The notes beneath the pieces are model-generated. The model did no database searches, had not been told where the DNA came from, and saw only the letters and a program-made list of their open reading frames with translations. From Entomortierella parvispora E1425 (Eukaryota > Fungi > Mortierellomycota), in contig BQFW01000008.1 in NCBI GenBank assembly GCA_020891255.1, positions 2,418,001-2,482,000 on the forward strand: DNA of 64,000 bases, written 5' to 3'. How positions within the stretch are numbered: position 1 is the stretch's first letter; every line of letters starts with the position of its first letter. A program made the position numbers and the translations under genes. Positions 28,855 through 60,028 of the stretch are shown piece after piece.

Positions 28855-29751
28855 CTGATATAAGAGAACAAAGAATACGATCAGCAACAGCACGGCTACA
28901 ATAGCCAGGAGAAACAACGACGTTCAAAGGTGAAGGGGCGTACTTCTATGTTGGCCCTGCTACTATTTACTTACCGTTGACTGTGATGTCCTTCTTCAAG
29001 TCGAGGTTCTTGACAGTGTGGCTGAGAGCATGGACGTTCAGTTTGCCTTCGAGATGCCAGACAAAGCTTTCGGCGTTGAGCATATAAGACGAGAACTCTG
29101 TAAAGCCGGTGGCATTGGTGACAGTAAAACTACTAGCAAGGTTGAGGGTACCATGACCGCCTCTACAGAAAGGATAAGAAGAAGAAATAAGGGTCGGCTT
29201 TAAGAATCATTGCAAAGCATTGTCATCATCAACCATAGAGACCAGTTCACTTACGAGGCCTTGCTCGAGCCGGGAATCTGAGTGGTACCAAGAACAATGC
29301 CATTCCACGATACGGTAACTTCACCAGGGAAAGAGATCTCGGCGGCAAATGGCCCAGTCTTTCTCATATTGCCGACCATGACAATATCCATGTTTGTCGC
29401 TGAGGGGTTGGTAATGTCCTATTGATAGCAGAGTGCAGGTTGGTTCGTAAGAATGGCTAATCCCGACATTGTCCCTCCACGATCAGAAAGATGGACAGGG
29501 TACTCTTAACATACAATCTGATCAAACTCGATGGTCGCCTTGTTCATCAGACCCTGGGCAATCTTGGGCATGATCACGTACAGGCCGAGGAGAACGGCGA
29601 CGATGGTGGCAATGATCAGGTTTGGGATACAGAACATCCAGAACTTGCGCCGACGATAGAACTTTGGGCGGTGAGGCTGCTTCACATCGTCGTACTCCTC
29701 AAACTCGTCAGGGTGGTGGTCCTCGTCCTCATCGCGGATATCGAAGGCCAT
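24648..29751 (-). CDS. DUF3712/LEA_2-repeat membrane protein, paralog B (inverted, tail-to-tail with A), 4 exons
   Basis: Exons 29751-29515, 29418-29255, 29162-28975 and 28854-24648. Same intron positions as paralog A. About 1,100 aa nearly identical to A, followed by a divergent C-terminal ~350 aa. Confidence 0.85.
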
Positions 29752-41407: not shown

Positions 41408-41491
41408 CTGAGAAATACATACGTATTCTAGACCAAGTCTAGTTCGTCGCAGCATCAGTTTGATGTGACTCGGAAAGTTGTGTTCCAGTCG
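41408..41491 (-). ncRNA. Candidate omegaRNA scaffold / element 3' end of Fanzor A
   Basis: CGACTGGAAC-CAAC-TTTCC...GATGC...ATACGTATGTATTTCTCAG is shared with Fanzor B. Hairpin CTAGAC-TTG-GTCTAG. The ncRNA call is an inference. Confidence 0.4.
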
Positions 41492-42145
41492 TTGATGAGC
41501 TGGTGCTGGGAAGGGGGTGCGACCACAGTCGCTTGATGGTGGTGGAGAACGGGGCTAGCGTGCTCCGATCGGATGAAGTCAGCTGAGAATAGCCCGCGAT
41601 GGCGATGTTCAGGGATGCATTGCCGTCACGGCCTCGGATAGTGTATCCACAGCGGTACGATATGCACTTTGCATTCGTGCATTCAACCGCTCCGTTAAGT
41701 CGGACAAGCTTCATGGTCCCTTTTCGCATCCGACGGGCTCGAGCAAGTCGGATGGGCTTGAAACAAAAAGGACAAGTCTTTGAAGTGTTGTTCTCGTTCG
41801 TCTTGCAGACCGGTCCATGGTGCATGTGTCTGTGCGGGATCTCGTTCCCCCCCATTCTTGTATTGCCCTTCAGGCGTGATCCCACTCCCATACCTGCCGC
41901 CCCATGAAGAAATAATGGGATGACTTTGGGCAGAGACCGCGGGCAGTTCTGGACGTGCTTGAGGACGAGGCGTTTCTTTCCCAATGGATCCATTATTAGC
42001 TCTGGTCTGTGATGGGTTTTACACGAAGGGCAAAAACCGTTAGATTGGATCTTGTCTTGCAATTGAGGAGTCATTGCTACAGACGACGATGATACTGAAG
42101 GAAAGGGAGGCTTGACTGGTACTTGATTGCCTAGTAAGTTTATAT

Positions 42146-42179
<34 letters not shown>

Positions 42180-45100
42180 AACTTTACTGTTGTTTTCCTG
42201 TTGCACGCCAATCATTCAAAAGTTCAAACATTGTACTTGCCTTGGCCCATGTTTTTGAAGACTTGACGCTCTTTGGCGGCTACATGATCATAGGTCCTCT
42301 TTAGCCGTCGGGCGACATTGCGGCTCGCCCTGGCCATGCTTTTCGTATGCTCAAAAGCATGGACCTTGTCTCTGACGTCTCGACGACCCGTGGCAGCCTT
42401 CTTCATGTCCGCAACGGTGTTTGCTTTCAGAGGCGACATGGTCCCCAATTTGTCATACACAGATTGGATATCCAAAGTTCTTTCAATCGCCTTTTTCCTG
42501 CGCTTAGTCTGTCGCGTGAGGCCTGACAGATGGCGGATATGGGCGACCGTCGTCTTGTGCGTCTCGGGGATCTTGATTAGGGCAAGCGCCTCCTTCCTGC
42601 CAGCTTTCAATGCCATTTCTAACTCATCCTGGTCTGCAGTGGCTTCTGGCGGGTCCTCGGATTCTTCTGACAGTAGGTGGAAGCGATTTTGTAGCTTGAT
42701 GAGGGTCGACTCGGGCACCACCACAGTCTCAAAAAGAGTCTTTGCACCGGGATCAGTTCCCCCTGGAACCAGGGTGATTTGGCGGCTACCACTTTTCCCG
42801 TTGTTCTCTGCAATGTCCTTCCTGAGCTGCTTGATACAGGTTGCCTCCACGTAGTCCATCGATCCTGGCCGTGCTCCAGAAGGTGTCGAAGTGTAGGTAG
42901 GCTTGGCTGGCGCTGAAGAACTCGACTTGCTGGCAGCGGCACGGGATCTGGCACTATTTACAGCGGCAACAATCGTCGCAGATGAAGATGAAGCCGGAGC
43001 AGGAGCGACAGACTTGCCTTTCCCCTTGGAGTTGGCACGCGACGAGGTCAAAGCTTTTGCTGCAGCTTTCTTTTCCCTGGCGTATTTCTGGTAGGCGTAC
43101 CTTTCTTCTTTGAGATTCTTGATCTCGAACGCAAGGGGAGGGATCTCCGCCCGTGAATTTTGAACAAAAATCCGCTGGTCATTGAAGTTGTTGTAAGCAA
43201 TCTGGAGGGCCTCCTTCGTGATCGGTTCTGTATCACTCTCAGTGGGGTCAGTGTCCACATCCATCGCAGCTTCCATGTCCTGACCAGTGTCCAAATCCAT
43301 TTCAGCCGGGGATGAAGAGCCGGAAGTGCTTTCTTCATTGTCGACATCCATAGAGACAGTGGAGGCCTTTACGAGTGACAATTTGTCCTGCAGGATCTTG
43401 TTCAAAAGACTTTGCTGCTTCGCCTGTTTTGCAATCGCGCGGTTGAGTTTTCCAAGCTTGGCTGCTTTCTCCTTCAAAGTCTCTTCCAACTCTTTGGCGC
43501 GCTCTTCTGCCGCGTCTGCCGTTATTCCAGATTGAACAAGTTCTTGCTGGCGGGAGGGATGCTTGGACTTTGACGACGGCTGAATGTGTTTTTTCTTTTT
43601 CTCGGACCAAGCATCTTGCACCGAGTCGTTGTTCGTTTTTGAGCCCATGATCTGCACAGTCCACGGATCAACGTACACTATTCTAGAGTGCAAAGACAGC
43701 AAATTGAGGCTCCGTTTAGTTTTCAGTTTGTCATGATTGTGTTGTAGTGTTGCGCAAACCATAGTGGTCCTTACCGTTCTTCAAATCGAAGATGATGTCG
43801 TTTGCAAACGTTCATCACGAAATTCAAGTCGAAAAAGGCTCCAAGAACCTTTTTCACGTTAACGTGTTTCTTGGCCTGGTCCGTGGACAGCACCTTTCCG
43901 TCGCTCACGATTTCAAATTCCTCTTCATTTCTTGAACAAAGCACTTCTCGAATCCCAGGCGCATCCAGTACGGTCGGATGGCTCTTCCCGCAAGAAGACA
44001 TCGGGAACAACTTGCGCGCAAAATCAGGATATCCCAGTGCACGCAGTAGGTTGTTTGCCAGAAAACAGAAGGGTCCCAAGACGAGAATGTGTTCCTGCAA
44101 CTTGTTTGAATCATCTCTTTTAGGGGTGTATGGCCGAAGCTTGTTCACAATATCGACGACCGCTTTGATCTCGTCATCGCTGAACTTTTCCGGCTCATAG
44201 AGATGATCGCGAACATAGTCTGGCAAGATTTCCGCTGGACAATCAGCTTTATCAAGCAGGATACCAGTGACAGCCTCTAACGCCTGAAGGTGTTTTGAGC
44301 TTGGTTCAGGAGCTGGTTCGTCTATAGGACAAGCGGTGGTTATTATAATGACTTGGAGACTAGCGGCACATTCTCATGAGGTAACGTCATTCTTACCTTC
44401 GGCACTGGCCTCTTGTTCAGGTTCCAACTTTGGAGTGGATTCGTCTGATGGATCTTCTTGAGCACACTCCATCGCTGCTTCATCAAAACCATCGTCCTCA
44501 TCCGCCAAGTCGTCCTCGTCAAGATAATCCCGGTCGTTCTCCTCCCGCGCCAATTCTATAATGTCGACCTCGGATGGTATGCCGTCGCTGTCGCTGATCT
44601 GCTCGTCACTACCGTCCTTTTTGCGTTTGAGCTCGAGTTCAAGGATGACAATCTCCTCGTCGGCGACTTTGATCTTGTCACAGAAATCAGAGATCATGCA
44701 GAGGATATTCTGGACCCTGGCGGTCCGGGGTTGCCTCCCTTTCAAGTCGATGGGATCTCGTAGTTCCAATCTCGTGCTATTCCAAGCCGACTTGCAGGTG
44801 CTGATAGCCTCATCCAGCTGAATGAAGAGCTTTTTCAATGTCCAACGATAGGCCTTTCGACGTACATATGGAGTCTGCAGTTTCTCCGCTGCTTTTGCCG
44901 CCTTGCTTTCTGCAAACTTTTTCTTGAGATCCCGGTAACGTTGCTCTCCGAGAGGTCGAAGATGGACTCTCAATAAGTAACGAATAACCGCTCTTTTGAG
45001 ATCGAGATACATCTTTGCCTTCCAGATGTTTTTGTAGTTGGCAGCCATTGTCTTGATGTGCCCCAGCCTAGAAGTAGAGAGGCCCTTGGGACATTCGACG

Positions 45101-47312
45101 TTGTCAACATAACCAGCGTCCTTATTCCATGCCTGGCTGACAAAGGCGGCCATACTGGTCCAGAGAGGGTGGGACTGCTTCGCGTTGGCGGCAGGTCTGG
45201 GACGTTTGGTGCCTACCGATCGGGATGTTCCTAGAGAACTTGGACCAGCGACAGGATCAGAGTTGTCGTCCTCTTCCTCCTCGTCGTCTGGTTCGTCGCG
45301 ATGGCCCTGCTCTTCATCGGTAATTGGGTCCTCATCATCATGGTCATCATCGCTGCCCCGCTTCTGCTTCTTGCTCGACGCGGTCTTGTCATCTAGATTC
45401 CTCTTTAGCTGCGCAGCGATGTACTGAATACATTCTTGGGAAAACAGATCTTGGTTGTCCGTTTCGACTGCCGTTCTCTTTGCGTCCTCGTGGCAATATC
45501 TCCTCACGTCTGCCTGAAAGTCATCGGGCACCAAAGAGACTCTGAGGGAAGAGTTTTTTTTAAGATTGGCATCGCGTATCTCAAAGGCCTCTGGAAGAAT
45601 CCCGCGAATGTCGAATTCGTTGGGAGAGCATTGCTCGGAGCGAAACTCTCCTTGTAACACCTGCAAGTAATATGAAGGACAAGAGCTATTAATAACAATA
45701 TCTTTTGACTCGTCAAGGTCTCTCACCATCGTAAGGTCATTCCGTCTACTTACCCCTAGTTGGGCCATCATGATCGCCATTCGCAGCTCCTCAATATGCG
45801 ACGACATGTCTGCCTGCTTGGTGGCGAGTATCTCCTTGATCCTGCTCTTTTCATCAGCTGAAAATTCCTTCCGAAGAACATTATCAAGTGTTACTGACAC
45901 CGTACGCAACTGCAACTCGGGAACCTTTTCCTCTGGCACAGCGTCTTTCTGGGAACGGTCCTTCTTGCGAGCCATCTCGAGAGCCTTCTCGGCCATCTCG
46001 AGAGCCTTCTCGGCCTTCTCGAGAGCCTTCTCCCAAAGGTTGTCAAAGTCCTTCTTGACGATCAAACGGTATTCATGAACGGGCTTCCAGTTACTTTCCC
46101 CCTGCTTGCTTTTCTTTGCCATCATCTGGTTTGAAACGTTGTTTGCACACCATGTGCCTGGTTCCATACGATGCAAGGGCTCGATGGTAGTTGTCGTCGC
46201 TTGCATGACATTTCGAGGTACACCGATTCTTTTTTGCTCAAATCTCTTTGCCGCTTCCATTTTTTTCTTTAGAGACTCCTCGGTCATGCTCTTGGCTGTC
46301 AGCGCCTTTTTGACCGCCTTTTCAACTTGTTCCGACAAAGAATTTGAACTAGCAAATAGTGGGCAGCAATTTGTTAACAAGGACGCTTCGGTATTGCAAG
46401 GATAGAGTCACATATACACTTACAGCTCCTTCTGTAGTGCCGGCATTGCAATGTCCAATTGCAAGACAGGATAGCCTGGTTTCTGGTTCCTTTTCTTTCC
46501 TGGTCTAAACCGTGCAAGCTCATTACCCAGTTCATTATGCGGACCCTGTGGTGGATTCTGAGATGGCGTCCTTGGGGGTCCTGTTAGAAGGTTGGAGCAG
46601 GTGAGGGGTGCATATGTCGAGACCTGCTCATACGAGTTTCCAATATGTAAAATGCCGACACAGCGAGAGGGTTGTCCTGTCGTTGGCCTGTACACCTGGG
46701 TGTGCGACCGCGTTGATGGTATGACAATGGTGATGTTGAGGATTTCAGATAGTCGTCGCAGCAGTAGCCTTGTTGGGGGAAGGTCAAATCCCTTGCAAAT
46801 GGATTCGCCTTCGCAGTTGGACGCGCCGTCGCAGTGGGCTTTGCACTTCATCCAGATCCTGAATTTTGGTGCTGGAGCTCGGTTCAACAAGCTGACAATC
46901 AACGCAGCCAAGGATTCTGGCCCATTCTGAGCCACAGGTTCATCCTGGACAATGAGACCATAGGTGTCCTGGAGAGCCTGCAGTGTTTGATTAAGCTTTT
47001 CGTTGCGGGGCAATGGTACAGACTCAGCGCAGACGCTCTCGAGTTGGGGCCATAATCGAGGGTCCTGCTCAAACGACATGCATTCCTTGGCCTGGCCCAA
47101 AAAGTTTTCATCGTCTTCAAAGGTAATGGCAAGCTACAAATGGGCATTCAGTCATTAGTTTCTCATGCAAGCCTTTTGTTTGCGAATGGAGGAATCACCA
47201 TTCAAAAGAGCCTTACCTCTTCATCAGATTCCAAGAGCTTCAGTTGTTCGACAGTAAGGTCGGTGTAGGAATATGAATCCTCTGGTGTCTGGCCGTGACT
47301 ATCGGGTTCCAT
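41439..47312 (-). CDS. Fanzor A: giant (1,781 aa predicted) 7-exon TnpB/Fanzor-family RNA-guided endonuclease
   Basis: Exons 47312-47217, 47133-46424, 46348-45754, 45660-44397, 44321-43775, 43682-42241 (GC donor) and 42130-41439 sum to 5,346 nt in frame. RuvC-I GGTDPG (D 42752-54); LHGAAGMGVGSRLKG; TNENNTSKTCPFC (E 41793-95); CTNAKC; RDGNASLNI (D 41625-27). Confidence 0.9.
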
Positions 47313-47402
47313 GCTTGGTGGGAGGTATGTTATCACTGGAAAGGGGGAGGGGAGGAGGGAAGAGGGATTTCGAGTCTTTGGGCCACAGAGGCGCGCTTTA
47401 TT

Positions 47403-47415
47403 CGACGCGCGTGCA
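47403..47415 (-). promoter_or_regulatory. CGCG-core (MCB-like) motif upstream of Fanzor A (TGCACGCGCGTCG)
   Basis: About 90-100 nt upstream of ATG 47312. Matches TGCAGACGCGTCG upstream of Fanzor B. Confidence 0.45.
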
Positions 47416-47657
47416 AGTTTCGTTAAGGGGGTGGACCTGTGGTCCTGATTGTTGGGATTGTTGTGGAGATGTCCACAATGGCCACAAAGACCGCGTGTTT
47501 TTCTCTTGAAACGGACTATCCACAAGGATTGGGTCCGATCACAAAGACCTGCATCCATGGATAACATCGCCGCCAGTACCTTCTCTAGCGTCTGTGGCCA
47601 TTATGAATACGGACCTCCATATATGGGTATTGGAAATATTCCTGTTGCCGTCTGTGT

Positions 47658-49550
47658 TTGTGCGCGGGCATCCGACATTCATTGACGGCCACATATTACG
47701 ACAAGTATATATACTGTCAGCGCGATGAGATGATCCTCCTCATCTGCATTCCCTATCATCTTTTCCCCAACCATCTACCCTCTTCCTTCGTCAAGGTCCC
47801 AATTAACTCTTGGATGCAAAACACTCAGCGGGAGGCTCACGCCCCTCACTCCTCTTCATCACTACCACTTACACGGCCATCATCACCGAATATATGGTCA
47901 TCACCACCACCACTTGCACTGCCATCATCACGGCCCGCATGGCCATCACCACTACCACTTACACGGCCATCATCACCGAATATATGGTCATCACCACCAC
48001 CACTTGCACTGCCATCACCACGGCCCGCATGGCCATCACCACTACCACTTACACGGCCATCATCACCGAATATATGGTCATCACCACCACCACTTGCACT
48101 GCCATCACCACGGCCCGCATGGCCATCACCACTACCACTTACACGGCCATCATCACCGAATATATGGTCATCACCACCACCACTTGCACTGCCATCATCA
48201 CAGCTCGTATGGCCATCATCGCATCCCCTATGGTTATCATCAGACCCCTTGTGGTTATCACCACCCCCTGTATGGCCATCATCACCGACTGTTTGGCCAA
48301 CATCACAGCCGCTATGGTTGTCATCGCCGTCTGTATGGTTATCATCACCACCTGCATTGCCATCATCAGGTCCTCTATGGTTATCATCGCCGCCTGTCTG
48401 GCCGTCATCACCGCCTGTCTGGCTGTCATCACCGCAGTTATCACCGCCCGTCCGGCTGTCATCACCGCAGTTATCACCACCTGCATTATTACCGGAACTT
48501 GACAACGCTTTGATCATTCTGTTCAGTGAACCCGATGGCGGCTTTAACTCATACGAACTTGATAACGCTTCAACTGTCCTCTTCAGTGAACCCGATGGCG
48601 GCGTTAATTCATATGAACTTGATAACGCTTCAACTGTCCTCTTCAGTGAACCCGATGGCGGCGTTAATTCATATGAACTTGACAACGCTTCAACTGTCCT
48701 CTTCAGTGAACCCGATGGCGGCGTTAATTCATATGAACTTGACAACGCTTCAACTGTCCTCTTCAGTGAACCCGATGGCGGCGTTAATTCATATGAACTT
48801 GACAACGCTTCAACTGTCCTCTTCAGTGAACCCGATGGCGACGTTAATTCATATGAACTTGACAACGCTTCAACTGTCCTCTTAAGTCAGTCTAACGTTG
48901 CCTTGCAGGTGATAGATTCTGCCTCACCCTTCTTCTTAAGTTCCCTTGAAGCTGACCGGCAGGAACAACAAGCTGCTTTAACTACACTCTCCAGCGAATC
49001 TGAGGACGATTCCGTGGAGATCATGTTACGGGAATATTTAATGGAAGGTGTCGACTATCCATCAGTGCCAGCGGCGTGCCCATTGAGATATGAGGACTCC
49101 TGGGGGTCACTACTACTTGATGACTCTATCGATCAACCTCAAGGCATTGAAGGCCAAGGAGCAGCTCAGGAGGAAAGATCTTCAACAGACGGAGGCAGTC
49201 TCATGTTGATGGGAGAAGGGTCTTCAACTGACGGAGGCAACCTCATGTTGATGGGACAAGGGTCTCCGACGGACAATGGCAGCCTCATGTTGTTGGAAGA
49301 GCCCATTCACGAACCACTTGATATTCCAGGGCATGGAGGCGTTCAGAATGGAAACTTGGCCGTTTCTTACTTTGGAAATTCGCATGTACCTTCTCTACCG
49401 GATATCAACCCGTCGTCCCTAAGCTTACCAGATGCAAGTCGGGGAGATGGGTGGCTGGGTATCCTCCCCCCAACACCACCGTCATTTCCCTCAGACATGG
49501 AGTCCCACGATGGGTCAGAGAGCGATGGGTCAGAGAGCATGCATTCATAG
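47658..49550 (+). CDS. Uncharacterised repeat-built protein (Pro/Ser/Trp 30-mers, acidic 20-mers, 14-mers); true start uncertain
   Basis: 1.9-kb open frame that continues ~220 codons past the arrays into non-repetitive acidic sequence. No recognisable domain. Confidence 0.55.
   Translation: MCAGIRHSLTATYYDKYIYCQRDEMILLICIPYHLFPNHLPSSFVKVPINSWMQNTQREAHAPHSSSSLPLTRPSSPNIWSSPPPLALPSSRPAWPSPLPLTRPSSPNIWSSPPPLALPSPRPAWPSPLPLTRPSSPNIWSSPPPLALPSPRPAWPSPLPLTRPSSPNIWSSPPPLALPSSQLVWPSSHPLWLSSDPLWLSPPPVWPSSPTVWPTSQPLWLSSPSVWLSSPPALPSSGPLWLSSPPVWPSSPPVWLSSPQLSPPVRLSSPQLSPPALLPELDNALIILFSEPDGGFNSYELDNASTVLFSEPDGGVNSYELDNASTVLFSEPDGGVNSYELDNASTVLFSEPDGGVNSYELDNASTVLFSEPDGGVNSYELDNASTVLFSEPDGDVNSYELDNASTVLLSQSNVALQVIDSASPFFLSSLEADRQEQQAALTTLSSESEDDSVEIMLREYLMEGVDYPSVPAACPLRYEDSWGSLLLDDSIDQPQGIEGQGAAQEERSSTDGGSLMLMGEGSSTDGGNLMLMGQGSPTDNGSLMLLEEPIHEPLDIPGHGGVQNGNLAVSYFGNSHVPSLPDINPSSLSLPDASRGDGWLGILPPTPPSFPSDMESHDGSESDGSESMHS
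47859..48218 (+). repeat. 90-bp tandem minisatellite x4, followed by degenerate 18-21-bp subunits to ~48480
   Basis: The unit encodes PLPLTRPSSPNIWSSPPPLALPSPRPAWPS. Units start at 47859, 47949, 48039 and 48129. Confidence 0.95.
48495..48883 (+). repeat. 60-bp tandem minisatellite x6.5
   Basis: Unit GAACTTGACAACGCTTCAACTGTCCTCTTCAGTGAACCCGATGGCGGCGTTAATTCATAT (ELDNASTVLFSEPDGGVNSY). The inner copies are nearly identical. Confidence 0.97.
49179..49300 (+). repeat. 42-bp tandem repeat x3 (SSTDGGSLMLMGEG)
   Basis: Units start at 49179, 49221 and 49263. Confidence 0.85.
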
Positions 49551-50867
49551 TATCTACGGCAGTTGGGGGGGGGGGGGACTAACAATTATTGACCCGAGTC
49601 TCCTAAAAAGAAATGGAATAAATTCAAAGAAAGTTCATTTTGCAACATTCTCAGCCTGGCCGTGAATAGTAATAAAGCAATGTCAAAAGGCCCGTTCAGA
49701 TCAGGTCTGTTAACGATGGTAATGACTGAAGGCACTAGCCATCGTAGCTGCGAAGCAAAGATTCCTTCGGCTTTTACTTGTAGATCGAAGATGTTGTTTT
49801 ATTAATGACAGTATGTTGCCCAGATCGTCAAGACTGCCCCTAGAAGGCCCATTTTATAGTCCATCACTTCATTCTTGCCTTTATTTATCGCCGCTGCATG
49901 TGTGGCCTGGTGATTAACACATATTGCTGGAACGATCAGACAATGCAGGAGCAAGAAAAAGAAAGTATGGTTTAGTATGAATTGCAGGCTCGGGAACTGT
50001 AATAGGCACAGAGGGAGAATACAAGGAGGGGACCAAGGAGAGGACAAGGGCAGGGAGAAGCAGAGTTAGAGAAGTGAATGCCGTTTAATGAGTTGGAGGG
50101 AGGGGGGTATATATATATGTCTATCTGGCTATGGTACTGTAACTATGTTGGGATTGGTTGGAATGTGGGAGTGGCAGGGTTGGGGTGGAGTGGAGTGGAG
50201 TGACAAGATCACAGAAGCTGTAGACACGCGTTGCAGGAACACAGCAATAAATCAAAGAATATACTAGAAAAGGACCGGGTCTGCGTTGAGTCTGAAGGGC
50301 CTTGGAAAGCAGTTCGTATCTAAATGGATACCGATCATGCTATAGGTTAGGTCTACAGTAGACCCTTGCTCGAGGGGTACTGTTGGGGATTACAAGACAA
50401 GCCAATGGGTTTGACAAATGATCCTAGATTCGGGATCCTATGTCAGAAGAGGCGCGTACAATGGTCGACAAATCTGCTCTGTGCCCCGTCGTAGCATGCG
50501 ACAGATCAGTAGCGGATGTTGCACAGGCTGAAAACCAATGTGTGTTAAAGGCCAGTATACGAGAGGATTGAAGGGATAGTAGGCTTTAATGTCATCGGAG
50601 ACTGGGGTTCTAATACTGCCAGGTTAATCCGAAGAGCTGCAAAAGGCCGGAAAATTTGCCCTGACTTATTTGCTTTACAATTGTTTTTTCGAGTGAGATC
50701 AGTGTTCATTCATCGTAATCGAAAAGTTAAGGGGTTGTCGTCTTTAGATGACCTGCACAGTAAAATATATATCAATGAACAGTCACTCCGGTTAACTTAG
50801 AAATTTGGTGGGCTAAATGCACGTGACAAGACGGGCACGTGAACATGGACGCAGGATAAATAAAATA

Positions 50868-51066
50868 CTAGCGTGTCTGCCCGTGGCATATGCCCCGGGT
50901 CTGGCATTCTGCCACGGAAGGATTATTTTTTTTTTTGTTTTACACGGTCAAAAGTCTCCCGTAGCCAATATTGATGTGCCCATTCTCGATCAGGATCGCA
51001 AGGGGCGACATATAGTTGACCGTAGCCAAAGACTGTGGGAGGAAGATACAGTCCTACTCCTTGTAG
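50868..51066 (-). mobile_element. Helitron 3' terminus with a degenerate PIF1-like helicase C-terminal fragment
   Basis: Minus strand: LQGVGLYLPPTVFGYGQLYVA (51066-51004; compare the Helitron helicase motif VGxYLPxPVFxHGQLYVAxSR), then LAILIENG after a frameshift. This is followed by the 20-nt palindrome CCCGGGGCATATGCCACGGG (50899-50880), an 8-nt spacer, CTAG (50871-50868) and a flanking T. Confidence 0.85.
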
Positions 51067-51600
51067 GTTTTATACGCCCCGCTTTGTGTTGCCAGTAGAT
51101 CTGGAATTGAGGAAAGAGTGGAGCGGCAGAGGAGGAAGATAATCGGTGAGGAGGAAAGCCAGCATGGTCAATGGTCGATTCTTTTTTTTTTTTTCCTCCT
51201 GATATTCGCTCTTCACTCACATATACAAACTCTCCAAAAGACATCATACAATGAATGAGGGCAGCAGTCAGCTCCCTGGTGATTTTGGCGCGCCTCGCAG
51301 CAAATCTTGTTTATGCCAAGGCACCGGAAATCGTTCTAGACCTTGCATTCAAGGCATGTGCAAAAACAGGGCCTATAACCATCAATTTGTTTTCGCACTG
51401 TGGCTATGACGCCGATGGGCTGAAGGAGAATTTCGGTGCGTAGATTGGAGCATTGACTTTATTTACACTTCATCCAGCAATAAACGTGTCAATCAGAATC
51501 TGCGTGATCAAGATCTTCCATATTCTCCCGCGGGCGAGGGAGGGCAGCCTGTTGTAGATGGACAAGGCCATTCAAGCCATGCTGTGGGAGGTTAAGAGCC
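51067..51600 (-). pseudogene. Decayed unidentified gene fragment retaining an intron, fused to the Helitron tail
   Basis: A long minus-strand frame is interrupted by several stops (...IAG*SVNKVNAPIYAPKFSFSPSAS*PQCENKLMVIGPVFAHALNARSR...). A GTGAGT...polypyrimidine-CAG intron spans about 51102-51220. Confidence 0.35.
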
Positions 51601-51899
51601 GTCCGTAGGCTCTCCACATTCACAATAAGAGAAATTATTGAGTCTCAAGCTTTAATCGAATCCGTTTGAATTGTGCTCCATCAGCTTCTTCTTGAGTCCG
51701 TCGCCGTCTATCTTCCTGTGCTATTTGTGAATCCAAGTGCTGTGCTTGAACGAAAGTGGCGGTTGTTGGCATCTCTAGGCTCCTCTGGATCAGGCAATCG
51801 AGCATCTTGAGCAAGTCTCTGTGTAAACAAAAATCTTTGTAATTGGTCCTGGAGGTTGTGTTTGACCATCCTCGACTGCCTGTTAAATCCTCTGAACCG

Positions 51900-52350
51900 C
51901 CGCCGCTTTCCGTGATGCTGTTGCTCGCTGGATTGTCGATCCTGAGCCACCGCTGTTTCCTGAGGCATGAGTTTCGGGGTAGGTCAAATAAGCGAACAGA
52001 TGGAAAGCAACCTGCCCTGGATCTACTCCACGCTTCCGCTCCATGCGCTATGCTCTTTCAATAGCTTCTTCATAGGTGTTCTCCTCCAAGATCTGGAAGA
52101 GCTTTGCTGAGGAGTGTTTGGATGGTTTGACATATGGACTGGCATCAGTTGGCCAGCGCACACCAGGTAGACGAGTCGGAATGGACTCTCGAATGCGCGC
52201 ACAAATTTGATGGTGCTGCCATGGTGGCGGGTCAGGTAAATCACCGATGATTTTCCGATTGTGAGCAGCAAGAGCGGGTAGCTTCCGTAGATTCAATTGA
52301 ATGGTGAGGTTCTCTGGAAGACCATCACCATCTGATTCGATATCACCTGT
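51900..52350 (-). pseudogene. Possible degenerate retrotransposon gag-like fragment
   Basis: Frame-shifted pieces KFVRAFESPFRLVY and ENTYEEAIERA*RMERKR resemble LTR gag helices. The resemblance was judged by eye only. Confidence 0.3.
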
Positions 52351-52475
52351 AGGGGATCGGGAGGATTTTTTTTTTTTTTGTGTGGGGATCGGGGGGAAGA
52401 GTGCCGAGGGAAGGGGTATAGAGTCGAACATCGTTCAGATCACGTGTGTTTGAAGGTTTGGATGCGAGACTAGCC

Positions 52476-52488
52476 TGCAGACGCGTCG
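52476..52488 (+). promoter_or_regulatory. MCB (ACGCGT) motif upstream of Fanzor B (TGCAGACGCGTCG)
   Basis: About 110-120 nt upstream of ATG 52599. Counterpart of the motif upstream of Fanzor A. Confidence 0.45.
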
Positions 52489-52598
52489 CTCGCTCTTTGC
52501 TTTTCCCTGCTCCTCCGCCATTGCCCTTTCCCTTGTCTCTACCGCCTCTCCAATCACCAAAAGAACTCGTCTTGTCTTCATTACCTACTGCCAGCATC

Positions 52599-55500
52599 AT
52601 GGATGACATCGATGCTGATGTCCTGGAGGACATCAATGAGACTCTTACCATCAACATGGAGATTCAGGACATTGACTTTGGACGCGACATCACGGTATCC
52701 ACAGAGGTATGACTTTGAATTCCAGTTTGCAGTGGCGTTGGTGCTGTTGGTATGGTTTCCATACCCTTACTCTTATTCATGCTCTTTCCCCCGATAGTTT
52801 CCTGTTTCATTCATCGATGATACCGAGTTTCTTGCTGAGGCAAATGCACGACTTTTAGCTGAACAGGATGACGAGCTTCAGCTACGCGTTGACTACATGA
52901 TACAGGGTGCGGACGATGGACTGCCGCTTAACCAAAATCTCCGACAGACTTTGGATGTTCTCCACCATCGATACGGTCTGGTCGTAAGTACATGCTCGAG
53001 CTCCCTTTCTGCACTTGTTGCATCCGTCATGTCCCGAACATCGCTATCAGCCTTCCGAATTCAGACTCCCGGCGGCCCTGTCACTCTCCCTCCATCCCGA
53101 TTGCTGTTGAGAAGAATCTCTCAAGCTACACAGATCAAAATTGTTGTTGTATCGACTCGCTGCAAGAAACTTGTGTTCGAGCCTCTTAGCGAGCCGAAAG
53201 CGCTGGTTGTCCTTGCCCACATCGCTGATTCGTTTCAGGGAGTCAATACCTACACCGCGCTGACTTGTTCAGTAACAAGTCCCAATCGAGATTTCCGTAT
53301 GCCCTCCGTTCGACTTCCTCCTGTAATCCCGACAGCAGAAAGGGCCACATATCGAGAGGCAAAACGATCAATATCTCGCGAGATAATCGAGTTCAGCGTC
53401 TTGGAAGCCGAAGAGAGTTTTCTTTCCAGTTGGTACGTTTTCTGGTTTACCCAAAGCTATGGTAATAATTCTAGTATTAACCTTTGGACATATTATACTT
53501 AGTAAAACGACCTTGAAAAAGAGAATCAACATCGCCGTGAACAAGGTCGTCAGCAAAACAAAAGGAAAGAAAAAAGGTCCTGTGGATATCCGTGCCGCCT
53601 TGGAGAAGGAAAACGTCGACTTCATCGATGCCGAGTGTAAACTCCAGCGGCTACCAAGAGGGCTCATGCAGGACACCATATCAACTCTGGAAACATCCCT
53701 TGGAGTGAGAAAAGGTCGTATATCAAATGATGACTTTACGAAGCGTATGAGCGTGGAACAGACACACACGGCATATCGCAACTTTGTGAAGGAAAACGGC
53801 TGCCTGTTTTGGGATCATTCAGTTGAGAATAAGGACAAGAAACTCGAGCTTGAACCTGTCTCTAGTCAGTCCCATGTCCAAGAGAATCCCTCTCAGGTCA
53901 ATGATATATCCAAGACCCAAGAAATCAGGATGTGCGATGCTTCTTTGCACAGGATCCTCCGTAAAGACTTTTGTAAGGACAACATAACAAGGATCCAGGA
54001 AATCCTCGAGGAGAAACAAACGAGTATGTCAGACCACATGGATGAAATCCAAGTGGCAGTTTTGAAGGTGCACATGGAGGTAAGAAATACCTACTGTCGA
54101 TGAGACAATCTACACATGCTTTTTGCTTCCAGCACTCACTGACATATCATCCACTACATGATAGGTGTTTCGTGGTTTGCTGCACGAGACAGCAGAAGAG
54201 GTCGACATTTCTGACATTCTTCCTACAGGTTTTGAAATCCGCGACGCTCGGATCAAAAATGATCGTATCCTCAAAGTTGCGAAGGGCACCACGGTCTTTA
54301 TCGAAGAGACTATCAAAACCGACTCTGATCTTCACAACCTATTCAATCAGAGTTGTCTAGAGCACCTAGCAGCAAAGCTCAGCCCTACTTCATGGAGCTC
54401 TGAGCCTCCGCCAAAGAAACCAAGACTCGCTGGCGACGGAGGTGCAGACAGTCAAGGCGGGAGTGGATACGGAGAGCATCCAAAATGGGACAAGTTGGCT
54501 CACTTTATTCAACAGACGATGTATACAACCGATAACATCAAGTGCCCTCAAGGAATGTCTCGAACCAGAAATGAGATGCTCCGTGCTATGGCTACCAACA
54601 TCCACAACATCTGGAACGGATCAATATACAACGATCTGAAGAGAGCAGTCGTCCGCTGTCTTGTCCGGGTCTTTTTGCGACCTCTCAGTGAGGAGTGGTA
54701 CCGGCAGTTCAAGAAAAAAAAAGCCAAGGAGAGACGAGAAAGGATCGCTGCTAAGCAAGGCAAGGCGAGAAAACGACAAAAGCGATCCTGGCAGAGAACT
54801 ACATCTCTTATCAATCAACTGGATAGTACCATCGGCAGCTGCAACAGGCGATGGTCGGGAGCTACTCTCTTTCTCTCTGATCCACAGACTGGAGGTTGTC
54901 CACGTCTTACACGTATCCAGACACTGATAGGATTGCTCAATCCGGCAGAGAACGTGGCACCCCTATTATCGCTCTTTGCAGCTGTAGATGATGAGTACGA
55001 GGATGAGGCCTACATGGATATCGATGAGGATGATGACAATGATGCGGACATTTGGGAAGCAGATGACGCTGATGGCTTTGAAGAGGCAGCACAGGCAGAA
55101 ATGGGTATTGCGACACTGGGCCAGGCCATCGAGTCAACTGAAAAAGGTAACTTTACTGGTTCAATATATCGCTTCTATAAGAGATTAGAGAAAAAACATT
55201 GACACAGGTTTTTTTTTGTCTATAGCGGCCGCTCGTAAAAAAGAACCCAAGTCAAAATACCTCAAAGGCATCGAGGCTTTAATTTGCAAGCTCATCGATA
55301 TGGCTTCGTTGCCAGACCTTATCAGTGAAGCAGAGATTCGCAACCATTTGTTCTCTGGCCAAAGTTTCAAGGACAACGAAATTCAGGTGGCGGTTCACAT
55401 CGTCAATGCGTTGCGTCCGTTTGCCCCAAAGAAGGATGCCTCTGGATCCATTCCTCATCATGTTCTCGCTACTGGCCCTTTCGCCTATCTGGCAAATCAT

Positions 55501-57869
55501 CTCTTGATCGCCATGGGGTTCAGCGAATTTTCCAGACAGCTATCCCCTGTCTCGTCAGCCGGAAAGCTCCTCCCTCTGCCACTGAATTCCACTGGGATAA
55601 GTGAATCTCTGTGCGCCTTGGATCCACACCATTTCGATATCTTCGACTCAACCGGCCTACTGGTTTCAGATCAAAAACATGCGCCAGGGAACGCCCCTAC
55701 CATTTTCTCGGCGTTCTTCGACATGCAGGTGATCCATGCAACTTGTGCCAAATTTGGTCTGCGCTTCGGAGACAGGTAACAACATGTTTTGACTTTTTTT
55801 TTTTTTTTTTTTGACTGACGCAGAATCTAACATATTGACCCATTTCAATAGGCTTGTCTTCGTTGACGAGCATACTGTTAGAATTATGGGGTACGAGGCC
55901 CGACCGAACGCTCCACGCAACATGATCAAGGAGAAACGAAAGAAGCTTGGCAAAGGCCGTTCAAGGGAGCCTACGGATGCAGAACAGCGCCAAATTGTTC
56001 TCCATGAATCGAAACTATCCAAGGCGGAAGCCAAAACAAGTGCCGCAGATCATGATGTGCGTATAACGGAGCTCAACGAGGAGATAAAGGCACTAAACCG
56101 GCAGCTGGGGTTGGAAGAGATCCGGATGAAAAGCGTGAATGCAGATTTGCGACGGCTAAAAACTGAGAAACGCAAAGAGAATGACGTTAACCGAAAGGAA
56201 TGTCTGGGCGAGGAAATCGACACAGCATTCAGAGATCTGCATACGCTACGCTCAAGCGTTCACAGACTTCGGCGGAAAGCGCTTCCTATGCGAAACCAGA
56301 TCAAGGGGTTGCGGCAAAAAAAGTATGACCTTGACAAGTATGTTTCGTCCGAATCAAAGCCAAAGACGGAAAAGGAGGCGTACGGGGAGCTGAGCGAGTC
56401 GGTCACATCCAAATTCTCTTCGACACCCTCTCTCCTTCGCCGGGGATGCTTAGACTCTGTTGAATCAACCAGCATCGACAGTCTCGTCAAGGATATTGAG
56501 ACCAACAACGCGGATCAAAGGAACAGAAGGATTGTTTTAGTCCCAGGTGGGACGGATCCAGGCGCCCATGTGTTATTCAACACGGTCCCGATAACTGAAA
56601 ACAAACTGATCGAGCTTCGAAATCGTTTCGAGATACTTTTGAACGAGGAGGCAGAATCGGAGCAAGATCCGGAAGAAGAGGTGCAGTCAATTGACCAGAT
56701 ACGGTTCCCAGATCCGCACCAGGTCACTGTTAAGCACATACGCCACCATGCAGGCCTTGTGAAGCAATCGCGAGTCAGAAAGAAGCGCATTGCAGCTAAT
56801 GCTGAGGTACGCAAGGCACACGCTGATCTGGCGGATAACTCAATTCGGCGAGCAAACTCTTCGCATGCCATTGAGCAGGCCCAAGAAACACGTCGCAACT
56901 GTCGCACAACACTCCGATCTTTTGAGAAATCCAGAAGGATGAAGAACCTACGACGCCGTACTGAACTTCAACTGAGGAATACGTATGACAAAGTTGCAGC
57001 CGCGGAGCGAGACGCATTTAAGAGGGTGGTGAATGGTAAGTCAAGCACTGCTGTCTGTATTGATTTTACTGCAGCAGGTGTGCTCTATTTACAGTACTTA
57101 TTCGCATTCGTCTTTCAAACTCGACTCAGTAGACAGTAATTCATTGCAAACCTCAGGAGAGCCGTCCTATCCATCAACCGGATATTGCACAGACTGCAGG
57201 ACACACCACCGTCCAGAGTTTGTCGTCGATCCGAGTGCCCCTCGTGGGCGACGCCTCGTCTTGAAGCATGTGAACCAATGTCCAAGGGCGAGTCCCATCG
57301 TCGTGCCATTAATGCTTCACGGTGCCGCAGGTTCCGGAGTGGGTTCACGTCTCAAAGGTCATTCAAAAATGGGAGGGAACAAAATTCCTGAGAAACACTT
57401 GCGCTATACGCCGGTCCTCAAGACCAATGAACACAAAAGCTCCCAGCTTTGCCCCTTTTGCTTTTCGCAAATAAGACTCGTACGGGCAAGGCGCAACAAG
57501 AACGGAGTCATGAGGTTAGTGCGAGTACATGGAGCAATTCAATGTACAAACCCAGACTGCCCTTCCTTCAAGGTTGGATATGCTGATCGCGGGAGAGACA
57601 CCAATGCAGCGGTGAACATTGCATTGGCTGGATACGTATGCCTCACCTCTTCCGATCACAAGACCCTGCCTCCATTCGACCCACGGTGCCCTGAGTGGGA
57701 ACCTTCTTCAAACACCAGATCCATCTCGACTGGAACCTCAACCTTTCCTCTTGCACCGCAGGTCGATGCCAAGATTTTGGAATTGGGCATTCGCTCAACA
57801 TATGTAAGTACTCTCAGGTCAAATTTACTCATTCTCCTGTCAATTCTCATTGAGCTCCATATTAACTAA
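52599..57869 (+). CDS. Fanzor B: giant (~1,560-1,590 aa predicted) 7-exon TnpB/Fanzor-family RNA-guided endonuclease
   Basis: Exons 52599-52706, 52798-53432, 53503-54079, 54165-55146, 55226-55775, 55852-57035 and ~57157 (or 57130/57133)-57869 join in frame. GGTDPG (D 56555-57); LHGAAGSGVGSRLKG; TNEHKSSQLCPFC (E 57429-31); CTNPDC; RDTNAAVNI (D 57597-99). Confidence 0.9.
57727..57817 (+). ncRNA. Candidate omegaRNA scaffold / element 3' end of Fanzor B
   Basis: CGACTGGAACCTCAACCTTTCC...GATGC...ATATGTAAGTACTCTCAG. Possible ATGCC/GGCAT stem. The ncRNA call is an inference. Confidence 0.4.
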
Positions 57870-58260
57870 ATTTTCTTGGGTTATTTCCTTTTGAAAGTCA
57901 CAATAAAATGTTCATGACGTCTTTTTTCTAAAAATCTAAAATTATATTTTTGCCGAACCCTGGTGGCCTTGGTGGCCGCTGGAGTGGCGTGGTTCCCCTG
58001 TCATGGCCGAAGAATTCTGTAGCCGTGGCGTAGTTGTTGCTGTGCCACTCGTTCAAGAATCATCCCAGCCCCTTTGGATCTAGCGCGTCATTTGCACCCT
58101 CCTCACAAGCCTCTCTCAGACCACGTCAGGGCTGATTCTTGCCAAGGCTATTCAAACCCACAATCAACAGCCCTTGCACTCATCCCAAAGACAATTCTTC
58201 ATTATCCCTTCAGCGCGTACTGCGTTTAGAGAGATGCTTGTTGTATTTTGACTAGACTAT

Positions 58261-60028
58261 TTACAAAACGTTGACGTTTCCAAGATCCTTGCAGGCCTGG
58301 TCAACACGCTTGACCATGGTCTTCTCGGCCTCACGGACCCAAACACGGGGATCGTAGAACTTCTTGTTGGGCTTGTTGGGGCCATCGGGGTTTCCGACCT
58401 GGGCCTGGAGGTAACCCTATGAGACATATACAAAATTAAGAGTTGCTCAGGTGAGTAAAACGAATTGCGAAGAGCAATTGAAATGGAGGACTGGGTAGTG
58501 AAAGTAGGTGGTGCCCCTTGCTTGTTTACCTTCTTGCTCTCGTAGAAGTTCTTGATGCCCTCCCAGTAAGCCCACTGGGTGTCTGAAGAGAAAAATAAAA
58601 GATAGAAAAGATAGCGATTAGATCAGAGGAACAATGTAGATAAAGAAAGGTTATGACCTTTTTTTTTTTTTTTTTTTTTTTTTTGGTGATCCAAAGTGCT
58701 CTCGTCCAGTTGTCCGTCATTGTGTTAAAGTTGACAGTCGCTGCCTGCAAAGGCGAAAGGTGGACACGACCTTGCATTATCTCAAAAATATGAGTCTGGT
58801 CTTCATTTTTTTTTCTTTATCGGTCCTTATCTGCTTCAAGGAACCCGATTTAAGACATCTGAAGATCAAAACCCAAAAACAATTGCAGAGCTGACTGTGT
58901 GTTTCCTGTCACTGCCTAAGTCGTGTTTGTTGTTTGATCCACACTGTCGGACCACCTGCCGCGATTCACTCCAGCGAATGTCAAGAGTCATAGAGGGGTG
59001 CGAAAGGAAAGTAGTAAAAGAGGTTTCTTACCAGTGTCAACGTTCATCTTGACAACACCAAAGTCGACAGCGGTCTTGATATCCTGCTCGGTCGATCCCG
59101 AACCTCCGTGGAAAACAAACCAGACAGGCTTGTTAGACTCAAGCTTGCGCTGCTCCTTGACGTACTGCTGGTGCTTGCCCAAAAGCTCGGGGTGGAGCTT
59201 GACGTTTCCGGGAGCGTAGACTCCGTGGACGTTACCGAAGGCAGCAGCAATCGAAAACAAATCGGTGATCTTGGAGAAGGCATCGTAGATATCGAGAATA
59301 TCCTGGGGCTGAGTGTAGAGGGAAGCGTTGTCGACCTCTGAGTTGTCAACACCATCCTCCTCGCCTCCGGTGATACCGATCTCCATCTCGAGATGGCAGT
59401 TGATCTTGGCCATGCGCTCAAGGTACTTGACGCAGACCTCGATGTTTTCTTCCTTGCTCTCCTCAGAGAGATCGAGCATGTGGGAGGAGAAGAGAGGCTC
59501 GCCGTGCTTCTGGAAGTACTCCTCGTCAGCAGCAAGCATACCATCGAACCAAGGAAGAAGCTTCTTGGCGCAGTGGTCAGAATGCAGGATGACGGGGATG
59601 CCGTAGGACTTGGCAACGGCACGGACGTGGTGGGCACCGGCGACGGCACCGAGGATGGAGGCAGCCTCGCCCTTGTTGGAAATACCCTTTCCGGCGTAGA
59701 AAGCGGCACCACCGTTAGAGAACTGGATGATAATGGGCGACTTGGCGTCACGAGCAGCCTCTGTTGAGTATCAGCAGTAGTGTGTGAGTTAGAAAACAAG
59801 GGTGACAAGGAATAAACACGGCCGGGGAGCAATGGAATGCATGCATGCCAGGGAGCAATGCGAAAAGAAATGAGGGTAATGTCACGTACCGAGGGCAGCG
59901 TTGATCGTGGAGGAAGAGGTGCAGTTGATGGCGGGGATGGCAAAACCGTGCTTGGAAGCGTAGGCAAAGACCTTGCGGACGTTGTCACCGGTGATGACGC
60001 CGGCGGGGACGATATCGAGGAGACCCAT
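58261..60028 (-). CDS. FBA1: Fructose-bisphosphate aldolase, class II (4 exons)
   Basis: MGLLDIVPAGVITGDNVRK...FAIPAINCTSSST; LHSDHCAKK; FSSHMLDLSEE; EMEIGITGGEEDGV; FVFHGGSGS; KMNVDT|DTQWAYW; C-terminal YDPRVWVRE. Confidence 0.98.

Follow-up and report, generated by a model that had tools for sequence, protein, structure and literature searches.

We analysed a 64,000-nucleotide stretch of contig BQFW01000008.1 (the window), which carries two giant spliced genes, A and B, whose products resemble Fanzor1, a group of eukaryotic relatives of the RNA-guided nuclease TnpB. The window has a eukaryotic look, with short GT-AG introns and about 49% G+C. Both gene models were rebuilt from open frames linked across short canonical introns, with the alignment of the A and B proteins as a guide, and both are intact. 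The genes are divergent and lie head-to-head, with their 5' ends 5.3 kb apart and their 3' ends facing outward, and not back-to-back as the original prediction had it. In the predicted splice model of A, all introns are GT-AG except for one GC-AG (GC donor after exon 43682-42241), and the last acceptor is a prediction from sequence only; positions 45753-45661 in A are an in-frame, 93-nt counterpart of B intron 3. BLASTP aligns the two proteins over 1,762 columns at 31.7% identity, and neither has an internal stop, in agreement with the claim that the genes are strongly diverged yet stop-free. We found no third copy of A or B in the window. Every catalytic and upstream motif that had been listed is found in both proteins: GTDPG; GAAGxGVGSRLKG; KTNE...CPFC...CTNxxC; RGRDxNA; NIW...DLKRAV...LRP; and VDxxTVxIMG. 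All catalytic residues are present, and conserved residues are the sole basis on which the genes can be called catalytically intact.

To follow transcription, we aligned contigs of four public runs (X1, X3, X5 and X6) to window positions 52400-58300; X1 and X3 are two samples from two studies, and X5 comes from the sample of X3. In X1 and X3 contigs, we found that all six predicted B introns are spliced out at GT..AG borders, and the X5 contigs are the unspliced genomic form of B. Because a loose end in X1 consists of an Illumina adapter followed by GGG, typical of template-switching cDNA, we read run X1 as RNA despite its guessed label 'DNA?'. B is transcribed and fully spliced, and the check for RNA support at the junctions was passed for B; a search of RNA runs with the 3' half of A listed no run. 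The last acceptor of B had been placed at 57157 (intron 57036-57156); the contigs instead give acceptor 57130, which adds nine residues. Nine loose letters that follow position 57803 in an X3 contig equal 57898-57906, and therefore there is probably a seventh intron (57804-57897) and a 9-nt last exon (TCA CAA TAA), which gives a protein of 1,572 aa. Thus, of the two predicted sizes (~1,780 and ~1,580 aa), that of A stands at 1,781 aa, and the 1,582 aa of B becomes 1,591 or 1,572 aa with the spliced contigs. As a separate observation, X1 depth is ~200 over the last exon of B and 13-21 in upstream exons, about a tenfold difference, and an adapter + GGG loose end at 57080 suggests a capped 5' end within intron 6; this high-depth part (57080-57907) could be an internal transcript, a copy elsewhere or an assembly chimera.

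Table 1. Positions in the window of genes A and B, their parts, and the recognisable parts of the element that carries B
Feature	Position	Strand	Remarks
Gene A	47312-41439	minus	7 exons, 1,781 aa predicted; stop codon 41439-41441; no internal stop
Gene A exons	47312-47217, 47133-46424, 46348-45754, 45660-44397, 44321-43775, 43682-42241, 42130-41439	minus	predicted splice model
A N-terminal extension, ~residues 1-990	44019..47312	minus	alpha/beta domain, helical module with NIW...LRP block, acidic tracts
A Fanzor1 core, ~residues 990-1750	41535..44018	minus	two introns; WED/REC with coiled-coil and low-complexity insert, RuvC, zinc ribbon; boundaries by mapping onto homologue P0009
A RuvC-I Asp D1381 (GTDPG)	42752..42754	minus	conserved in 14/15 full-length relatives
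A Gly-rich segment at canonical RuvC-II position (GAAGMGVGSRLKG)	41865..41903	minus	after strand residues 635-641 of P0009 model
A alternative RuvC-II Glu E1664 (KTNE)	41793..41795	minus	invariant in 48 sequences; on SpuFz1 E541
A zinc ribbon CxxC...Cx4C (CPFC...CTNAKC)	41664..41774	minus	spacing equal to SpuFz1 CPRC...CTNPNC
A RuvC-III Asp D1720 (RGRDGNA)	41625..41627	minus	invariant; on SpuFz1 D606
5' subterminal region of B-clade element	50761..50866	plus	92.5% identical to E. parvispora
~1-kb upstream block	51300..52344	plus	86% identical to E. parvispora (taken as between genera); proteins 42%
Gene B	52599..57906	plus	8 exons including terminal micro-exon, 1,572 aa; 1,591 aa if last intron retained (stop 57867-57869)
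B N-terminal extension, ~residues 1-880	52599..55561	plus	homology to relatives, mapping onto P0009
B Fanzor1 core, ~residues 880-1530	55562..57689	plus	mapping onto P0009
B intron 1	52707..52797	plus	joint in X1 and X3
B intron 2	53433..53502	plus	joint in X1 and X3
B intron 3	54080..54164	plus	joint in X1 and X3
B intron 4	55147..55225	plus	joint in X1 and X3
B intron 5	55776..55851	plus	joint in X1 and X3
B RuvC-I Asp D1186	56555..56557	plus	motif GTDPG
B intron 6	57036..57129	plus	joint in X1 and X3; acceptor 57130, alternative 57133 (3 nt on)
B Gly-rich RuvC-II segment (GAAGSGVGSRLKG)	57321..57359	plus	motif
B alternative Glu E1446 (1,591-aa numbering)	57429..57431	plus	invariant in 48 sequences
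B zinc ribbon CPFC...CTNPDC	57450..57560	plus	motif
B RuvC-III Asp D1502	57597..57599	plus	invariant in 48 sequences
B terminal intron 7 (probable)	57804..57897	plus	GTAAGT...AAAG; X3 loose end
Right end of B-clade element (GAAAGTCACAATAA)	57893..57906	plus	holds 9-nt last exon and stop codon

In searches with single sequences, the family is hard to place: among all A and B exons and six full-length relatives, no Pfam family scored above its cut-off, and when single exons were run with phmmer against the PDB, the outcome was either empty or a spurious glutaredoxin/His-tag match. With a profile built from the last exons of both genes, a search of 1.84 billion cluster representatives gave 483 relatives at E <= 0.001, of which 232 were at E <= 1e-10. 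When a profile of the C-terminal core (58 sequences, ~770 aa) was searched against the PDB, the first match was SpuFz1, the Fanzor1 of Spizellomyces punctatus (E 7.5e-4), and the rest was coiled-coil noise; a last-exon profile anchored on the window gave only SpuFz1 (E 3.2e-4) and PpFz1 of Parasitella parasitica (E 0.048) at E <= 1. The conserved Glu and Asp of the family align with chain residues 935 and 1000 of an MBP fusion, which are SpuFz1 E541 and D606; Saito et al. (PMC10432273) count both among the four metal ligands of SpuFz1. The zinc ribbon matches that of SpuFz1 letter for letter (CxxC...C-T-N-P-x-C). Throughout the family, Asp/Glu/Asp and the cysteines of the zinc ribbon are conserved, with the Glu, an Asp and one Cys invariant in 48 sequences. 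The family search of a 5.8-billion-protein set returned family members only, with no canonical Fanzor as a bridge.

The order of these residues is also that of a Fanzor. Jiang et al. described a rearranged site in which the canonical RuvC-II position holds an inert Gly or Pro and a conserved Glu lies ~45 residues downstream (PMC10530073). In our family, GAAGxG comes after the RuvC-II strand, and the distance from the Gly position to the Glu downstream is 36 residues, so that the predicted site, a Gly in place of Glu with a Glu further on, fits the published rearrangement. We also compared both proteins with the signature of Bao & Jurka 2013, D-X(125,275)-[TS][TS]-X-X-C4 zinc finger-X(5,50)-RD in the C-terminal half. 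B conforms to it (D1186, 262 residues, SS-QL-CPFC...CTNPDC, RD); in A, the same elements are present in order (D1381, 285 residues, TS-KT-CPFC...CTNAKC, RD) with the first spacing 10 residues beyond the 2013 range.

For the fold of the core, we used AlphaFold2 on an 802-aa homologue, P0009, with an input alignment that included the window exons (pLDDT, a prediction of the local distance difference test, 83.1; pTM, the predicted template modelling score, 0.75). In a Foldseek search of this model against the PDB, four SpuFz entries are on top (E 2e-5 to 7e-5), followed by PpFz and GtFz; Cas12 families are interleaved with and below PpFz and GtFz, and Fanzor2 is far lower. We rejected Fanzor2 as the closer group, as ApmFz2 ranks only 13th (E 0.13). 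VIA-align of the model with SpuFz1 gave Z 14.5 over 338 aligned residues, spanning 119-762 of the model and 40-633 of SpuFz1 (of 638 aa), as compared to Z 13.3 for PpFz1 and ~11.7 for Cas12f. In the model, Asp403 closes the first RuvC strand, the Gly-rich segment comes after the strand of the canonical RuvC-II Glu, Glu677 comes after the next strand and Asp733 is at the start of the last helix. The core is expanded by an antiparallel coiled coil of ~100 residues in REC, and that of A also has low-complexity acidic and Ser/Ala-rich tracts. The model suggests that the C-terminal ~750 residues form a complete Fanzor1 core with WED/REC, a rearranged RuvC and a CCCC zinc ribbon. Family profile and homologue fold thus both point to Fanzor1 for the two giant spliced genes, as originally predicted, and in the proposed check of the C-terminal part, the P0009 model came out as RuvC with a zinc finger. 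The two upstream blocks that had been likened to REC/WED segments differ in their placement. VDxxTVxIMG forms a beta-hairpin within the SpuFz1-aligned region of the model and is plausibly part of WED; NIW...LRP is not REC/WED, because it lies within the helical N-terminal extension, outside the SpuFz1 alignment.

Ahead of the core lies an N-terminal extension of ~900-1,000 residues that is conserved in all full-length relatives. Along its length, it is homologous to the N-terminal parts of 1,285-1,823-aa Mortierellomycota proteins, and it is outside the SpuFz1-aligned region. The extra size of A and B had been ascribed to acidic and coiled-coil insertions; a coiled coil is indeed present, but most of the extra length is this extension. 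A model of it (pLDDT 75, pTM 0.37) has a well-predicted alpha/beta domain (~8-180) and a long helical region (~220-670). Foldseek of this model against the PDB found nothing below E 0.8, and an Atlas feature search with the N-terminal part stayed below noise level. Against AlphaFold DB, the helical region finds uncharacterised proteins (E 4e-8 to 1e-4). Going by their accession series, we take the AlphaFold DB matches, of 799-1,154 aa, to be from Mucoromycota; two of these accessions (A0A1X2GGQ0 and A0A1X2HEI3) match the helical region and the core model alike, and the best AlphaFold DB match of the core model is a 1,154-aa protein (E 1e-27). For the alpha/beta domain, OTU deubiquitinases recur as fold matches (Otu2, Z 6.2; several OTU proteins in AlphaFold DB), below reliable thresholds. 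Pfam gave no OTU match on the N-terminal domain, and the expected catalytic-Cys position is mostly Ser or variable. We regard an OTU-like fold, as modelled, as a lead only.

All named relatives come from Mortierellomycota, and the full-length members (1,285-1,823 aa) are homologous to A and B end to end. The named members that we found are annotated as 'hypothetical protein', and 0 of 28 relatives with listed precomputed domains has a Pfam domain. In the tree, B is sister to a gene of Entomortierella parvispora (100/99) and A lies outside this pair (100/98); thus, A and B are not a recent local duplication. A and B are on one side of the tree and a family from Mortierella sp. GBAus27b belongs to the other major clade, and single genomes hold several deep lineages. 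An observation similar to the A/B pairing was made at another E. parvispora locus, where two giant family genes lie in tandem (L008:8465-13580 and L008:14104-19290); the downstream gene (1,625 aa) has no DNA-level similarity to the first and belongs to a different lineage. Four full-length members of 1,573-1,586 aa (P0199-P0201 and P0206, in the 70-member cluster of P0170) are intronless and lie on 5.1-5.5-kb environmental contigs (JGI, ENA), about the size of spliced mRNA, which suggests that in nature members of the family are expressed. The annotated N-terminus of a 1,451-aa relative from Entomortierella lignicola (P0167) has a match to DDE_3, a Tc1/mariner-type transposase domain (E 4e-6), which is either a gene-model fusion or an adjacent transposase. 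Among the papers searched, none pairs Fanzor with Mortierella; an ordinary 677-aa Mortierella Fanzor is in the supplement of PMC10432273.

Close relatives of B are carried by mobile elements. In E. parvispora, an 8.1-kb unit with no transposase gene is common to three loci (95.7-99.5% identity). The ends of this unit, TTATTGTGC... and ...GCACAATAA, make an inverted repeat of 9 bp without mismatch, and the annotated stop codon falls on the right end. Window positions 57893-57906 align to this right end, where the three copies stop being alike; therefore the stop of the fully spliced B mRNA is the last three letters of the element. The donor and acceptor of the terminal intron and the micro-exon are likewise present in the E. 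parvispora copies. Blastn identity to the E. parvispora copy continues through the terminal intron up to the element end, and between what we take to be genera this intron is roughly as conserved as RuvC-coding DNA. Upstream of B, the ~1-kb block has frameshifting indels and no codon periodicity and is apparently non-coding. Rfam found nothing above threshold in it, with a weak snoU83B-like match at 51994-52081 (E 0.095); the block could be a cis element or an RNA of the transposon. When the 3' flanks of A and B were aligned, nucleotide conservation was convincing only in the coding part and at the terminal-intron donor. We also looked for repeats that bracket A and B together and found poly-A/T matches only, with no support for a single 16-kb element.

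The surroundings of B differ among strains. A 3.8-kb X1 contig leaves the window at 57907 and continues into sequence absent from it, which suggests a B copy in another context. Contigs of strain S2 (X3 and X5) and of a second species (X6) leave the window left of 52473/52474, just after CTAG, and share a different upstream sequence, so that 52470-52474, between the conserved block and the B ATG, is a rearrangement breakpoint. Positions 57916-58112 are covered by 0 of the 4 runs, including X5 with its unspliced genomic contigs, and five additional runs labelled as the same species contain none of the sampled words of B.

In the other major clade, the vehicle is of a different kind. Mortierella sp. 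GBAus27b has at least 8 family proteins that are >90% identical to one another, and a 7.35-kb unit with sharp ends recurs at six loci, with 97-98.6% identity among the copies. The 5' end of this element is TCTATATAATAAGG; its 3' end is a 7-bp hairpin, seven bases and CTAG, followed by T in 6/6 copies. Five or six of the six copies have the 5'-TC, preceded by A in three or four. Helitron1 elements are recognised by a 5'-TC, a 3' subterminal hairpin, a CTRR end and insertion between A and T (PMC3627910). The element has no long open reading frame (ORF) other than the giant gene, which is intact in 6/6 copies, with ratios of nonsynonymous to synonymous polymorphism (pN/pS) of 0.32-0.71, and the 163-nt 3' tail folds better than all 200 shuffles (z -2.64). 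At one locus (L005:7444-9050), a called gene with a Pif1_2B_dom match overlaps the 5' part of the element, possibly a Helitron helicase remnant. We rejected a Helitron of this kind for B, given the inverted-repeat ends in E. parvispora and the lack of a hairpin and CTRR downstream of B.

SpuFz1 (PDB 8GKH, 9CEU-9CEZ) is the best profile and fold match to the family and shares with it the order WED/REC, RuvC, zinc ribbon, the E541 and D606 positions and the CxxC...CTNPxC ribbon. The SpuFz1 gene is the single gene of an element bounded by inverted repeats and lacking a transposase (PMC10432273), as in the B clade. However, SpuFz1 has 638 aa, no introns and a 2.1-kb element with 30-nt repeats, whereas here the genes have 6-7 introns and encode 1,570-1,780 aa. 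These proteins have a coiled-coil insert and an N-terminal extension of ~900 aa, and the elements of the family measure 7-8 kb, with repeats of 9 bp and ~2-2.7 kb of non-coding DNA upstream. PpFz1 (Mucorales; PDB 9CF0-9CF3), the second PDB profile match, is likewise a fungal Fanzor1 of above-usual size. What makes it the largest of the solved Fanzor1 proteins is FRI, a ~100-aa insertion in RuvC that binds cyclophilin, and it was singled out for this insertion among Fz1 proteins that mostly have 600-700 aa (Xu et al., PMC11423790); a counterpart of the N-terminal extension is not described for it. Jiang et al. give a mean Fanzor size of 620 aa (PMC10530073). At 1,572-1,781 aa, A and B fall outside the typical 600-700 aa of a Fanzor1; this is a variant rather than an exclusion from Fanzor1, as size is descriptive rather than defining. 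CRe-1, CRe-2 and CRe-3 of Chlamydomonas reinhardtii are intron-containing Fanzor1 genes, each the sole gene of a non-autonomous Helitron2 (PMC3627910), and parallel the GBAus27b relatives in that a Fanzor1 is the only gene of a Helitron-type vehicle. In contrast to the asymmetric terminal repeats of Helitron2, GBAus27b elements have Helitron1-type ends (5'-TC, one 3' hairpin, CTAG), and the B clade differs from both in its terminal-inverted-repeat element. TnpB (ISDra2) and Cas12f have the RuvC and zinc-ribbon nuclease lobe in common with the A/B family, and presumably the logic of a guide RNA from the 3' end of the element; TnpB/Cas12f are prokaryotic proteins of ~400 aa, with a canonical RuvC-II Glu in ISDra2 and TnpA, an HUH transposase, as partner.

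Taken together, these data make it likely, with a probability of roughly 0.7, that A and B are anciently diverged members of a Mortierellomycota-wide clade of giant Fanzor1 proteins that are the cargo of transposons and, by inference, RNA-guided. Several points weigh against this. The sequence link to solved Fanzors is weak (E ~1e-3) and covers ~80 residues, only the Glu/zinc-ribbon/Asp stretch; the Pfam family Cas12f1-like_TNB (PF07282) is weak in both last exons (22.5 and 16.8 bits as compared to a cut-off of 26.3); and RuvC-I reads D-P-G, with Gly where SpuFz1 has metal-binding N385. The fold is that of P0009, a homologue 29-33% identical to A and B whose model stands in for theirs. We found neither transposon ends nor a transposase gene for A, the Helitron-like vehicle is that of the other major clade rather than of the clade of A and B, and the 5' inverted repeat of the B-clade element is absent at 40-59 kb of the window; because this repeat is lost, the window copy may be stranded and no longer move. 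A consensus fold of the terminal region from three sequences has almost no covariation. RNA guidance and the origin of the omega (guide) RNA are inferred by analogy with TnpB and SpuFz1; the role given to the extension is likewise a proposal.

The original prediction had considered a domesticated clade, and the main rival to transposon cargo is of this kind: an ancient Fanzor would have been exapted for a cellular role and fixed as paralogues, with the extension, the introns and the expression reflecting that role. Seven introns with correct splicing, ORFs that stay open despite 68% divergence, and housekeeping and other host neighbours with no transposase in the window are what such genes would have, and the missing 5' inverted repeat means that B may be immobile. 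However, near-identical multicopy relatives with transposon ends are present in both major clades, and B ends exactly at the right end of such an element. B is also absent from the five runs of the same species label and has other flanks in strain S2, and there are several deep lineages per genome, as in transposon families. We therefore think domestication unlikely.

For an active element, the proposed cycle would run as follows. The final ~100-200 nt of the element would give rise to the omega RNA, which would extend across the right end into the flank; this RNA would guide the RuvC site to element-free copies of the insertion site, which would be cleaved there, and repair after cleavage would restore or spread the element. 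What the N-terminal extension contributes is probably a function specific to eukaryotes, for instance targeting to the nucleus or chromatin, or the binding of partners. The nuclease could instead be active with no RNA guidance, with the ~900-aa extension giving protein-based targeting or some other activity. The extension is large, conserved and unexplained, and Rfam and the consensus fold demonstrate no structured RNA; however, the model matches the whole SpuFz1 chain, including the WED/REC parts that hold the RNA and the heteroduplex, and the 3' terminal non-coding DNA is conserved between what we take to be genera, so that this explanation is somewhat less probable than domestication. That the genes are decaying transposon relics with frames open by chance, as the degraded 5' end of the element in the window might suggest, is very improbable given ~1,600 and ~1,800 stop-free codons over 7-8 exons, the splicing and expression of B, invariant catalytic residues and pN/pS < 1 in the sister family.

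The transposon-cargo reading has a more specific form. The terminal intron and micro-exon are located exactly where the omega RNA should be encoded. We put forward, as a tentative proposal that is more doubtful than the general reading, that this is a mobile, phylum-wide Fanzor1 clade of more than twice the usual size, with a ~900-aa pseudo-OTU and helical module and a coiled-coil REC insert, in which the omega RNA would come from the terminal intron together with the 9-nt last exon, itself the right inverted repeat of the transposon, with the upstream block, which is much better conserved than the protein, as a second functional RNA or cis element.

Elsewhere in the window, we found no transposase, and A and B are surrounded by ordinary host genes. 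A gene for a class II fructose-bisphosphate aldolase (58258-60000, minus strand; Pfam E 5e-46) lies ~350 nt past the end of the B element, and on this side other strains match the window only from 58258 rightward. Between A and B, a 630-codon open frame (47658-49550) with tandem repeats of periods 45, 21, 60 and 42 nt encodes proline/serine-rich and 20-aa repeat units and has no Pfam match. Two paralogous ORFs of ~1,430-1,450 aa, at 19636-23985 (plus) and 24653-28927 (minus), have four DUF3712 repeats each and lie tail-to-tail.

We did not find the ~900-residue extension, as predicted from sequence, described for Fanzors; existing large catalogues may already hold these RuvC exons uncommented. 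What the family offers is a whole fungal phylum with intact Fanzor1 genes of 1,300-1,800 aa, as compared to the usual 600-700 aa. It is a natural experiment in what large accessory domains bring to a eukaryotic RNA-guided nuclease, in how such nucleases serve vehicles as unlike as elements with Helitron1-like ends and elements with inverted repeats, and in whether or not guide-RNA production is tied to an intron at the transposon end. If the omega RNA does come from the terminal intron, this would be a new architecture of eukaryotic RNA-guided nucleases, in which splicing is coupled to guide-RNA biogenesis. The proteins are also candidate genome-editing scaffolds with built-in eukaryotic adaptations.

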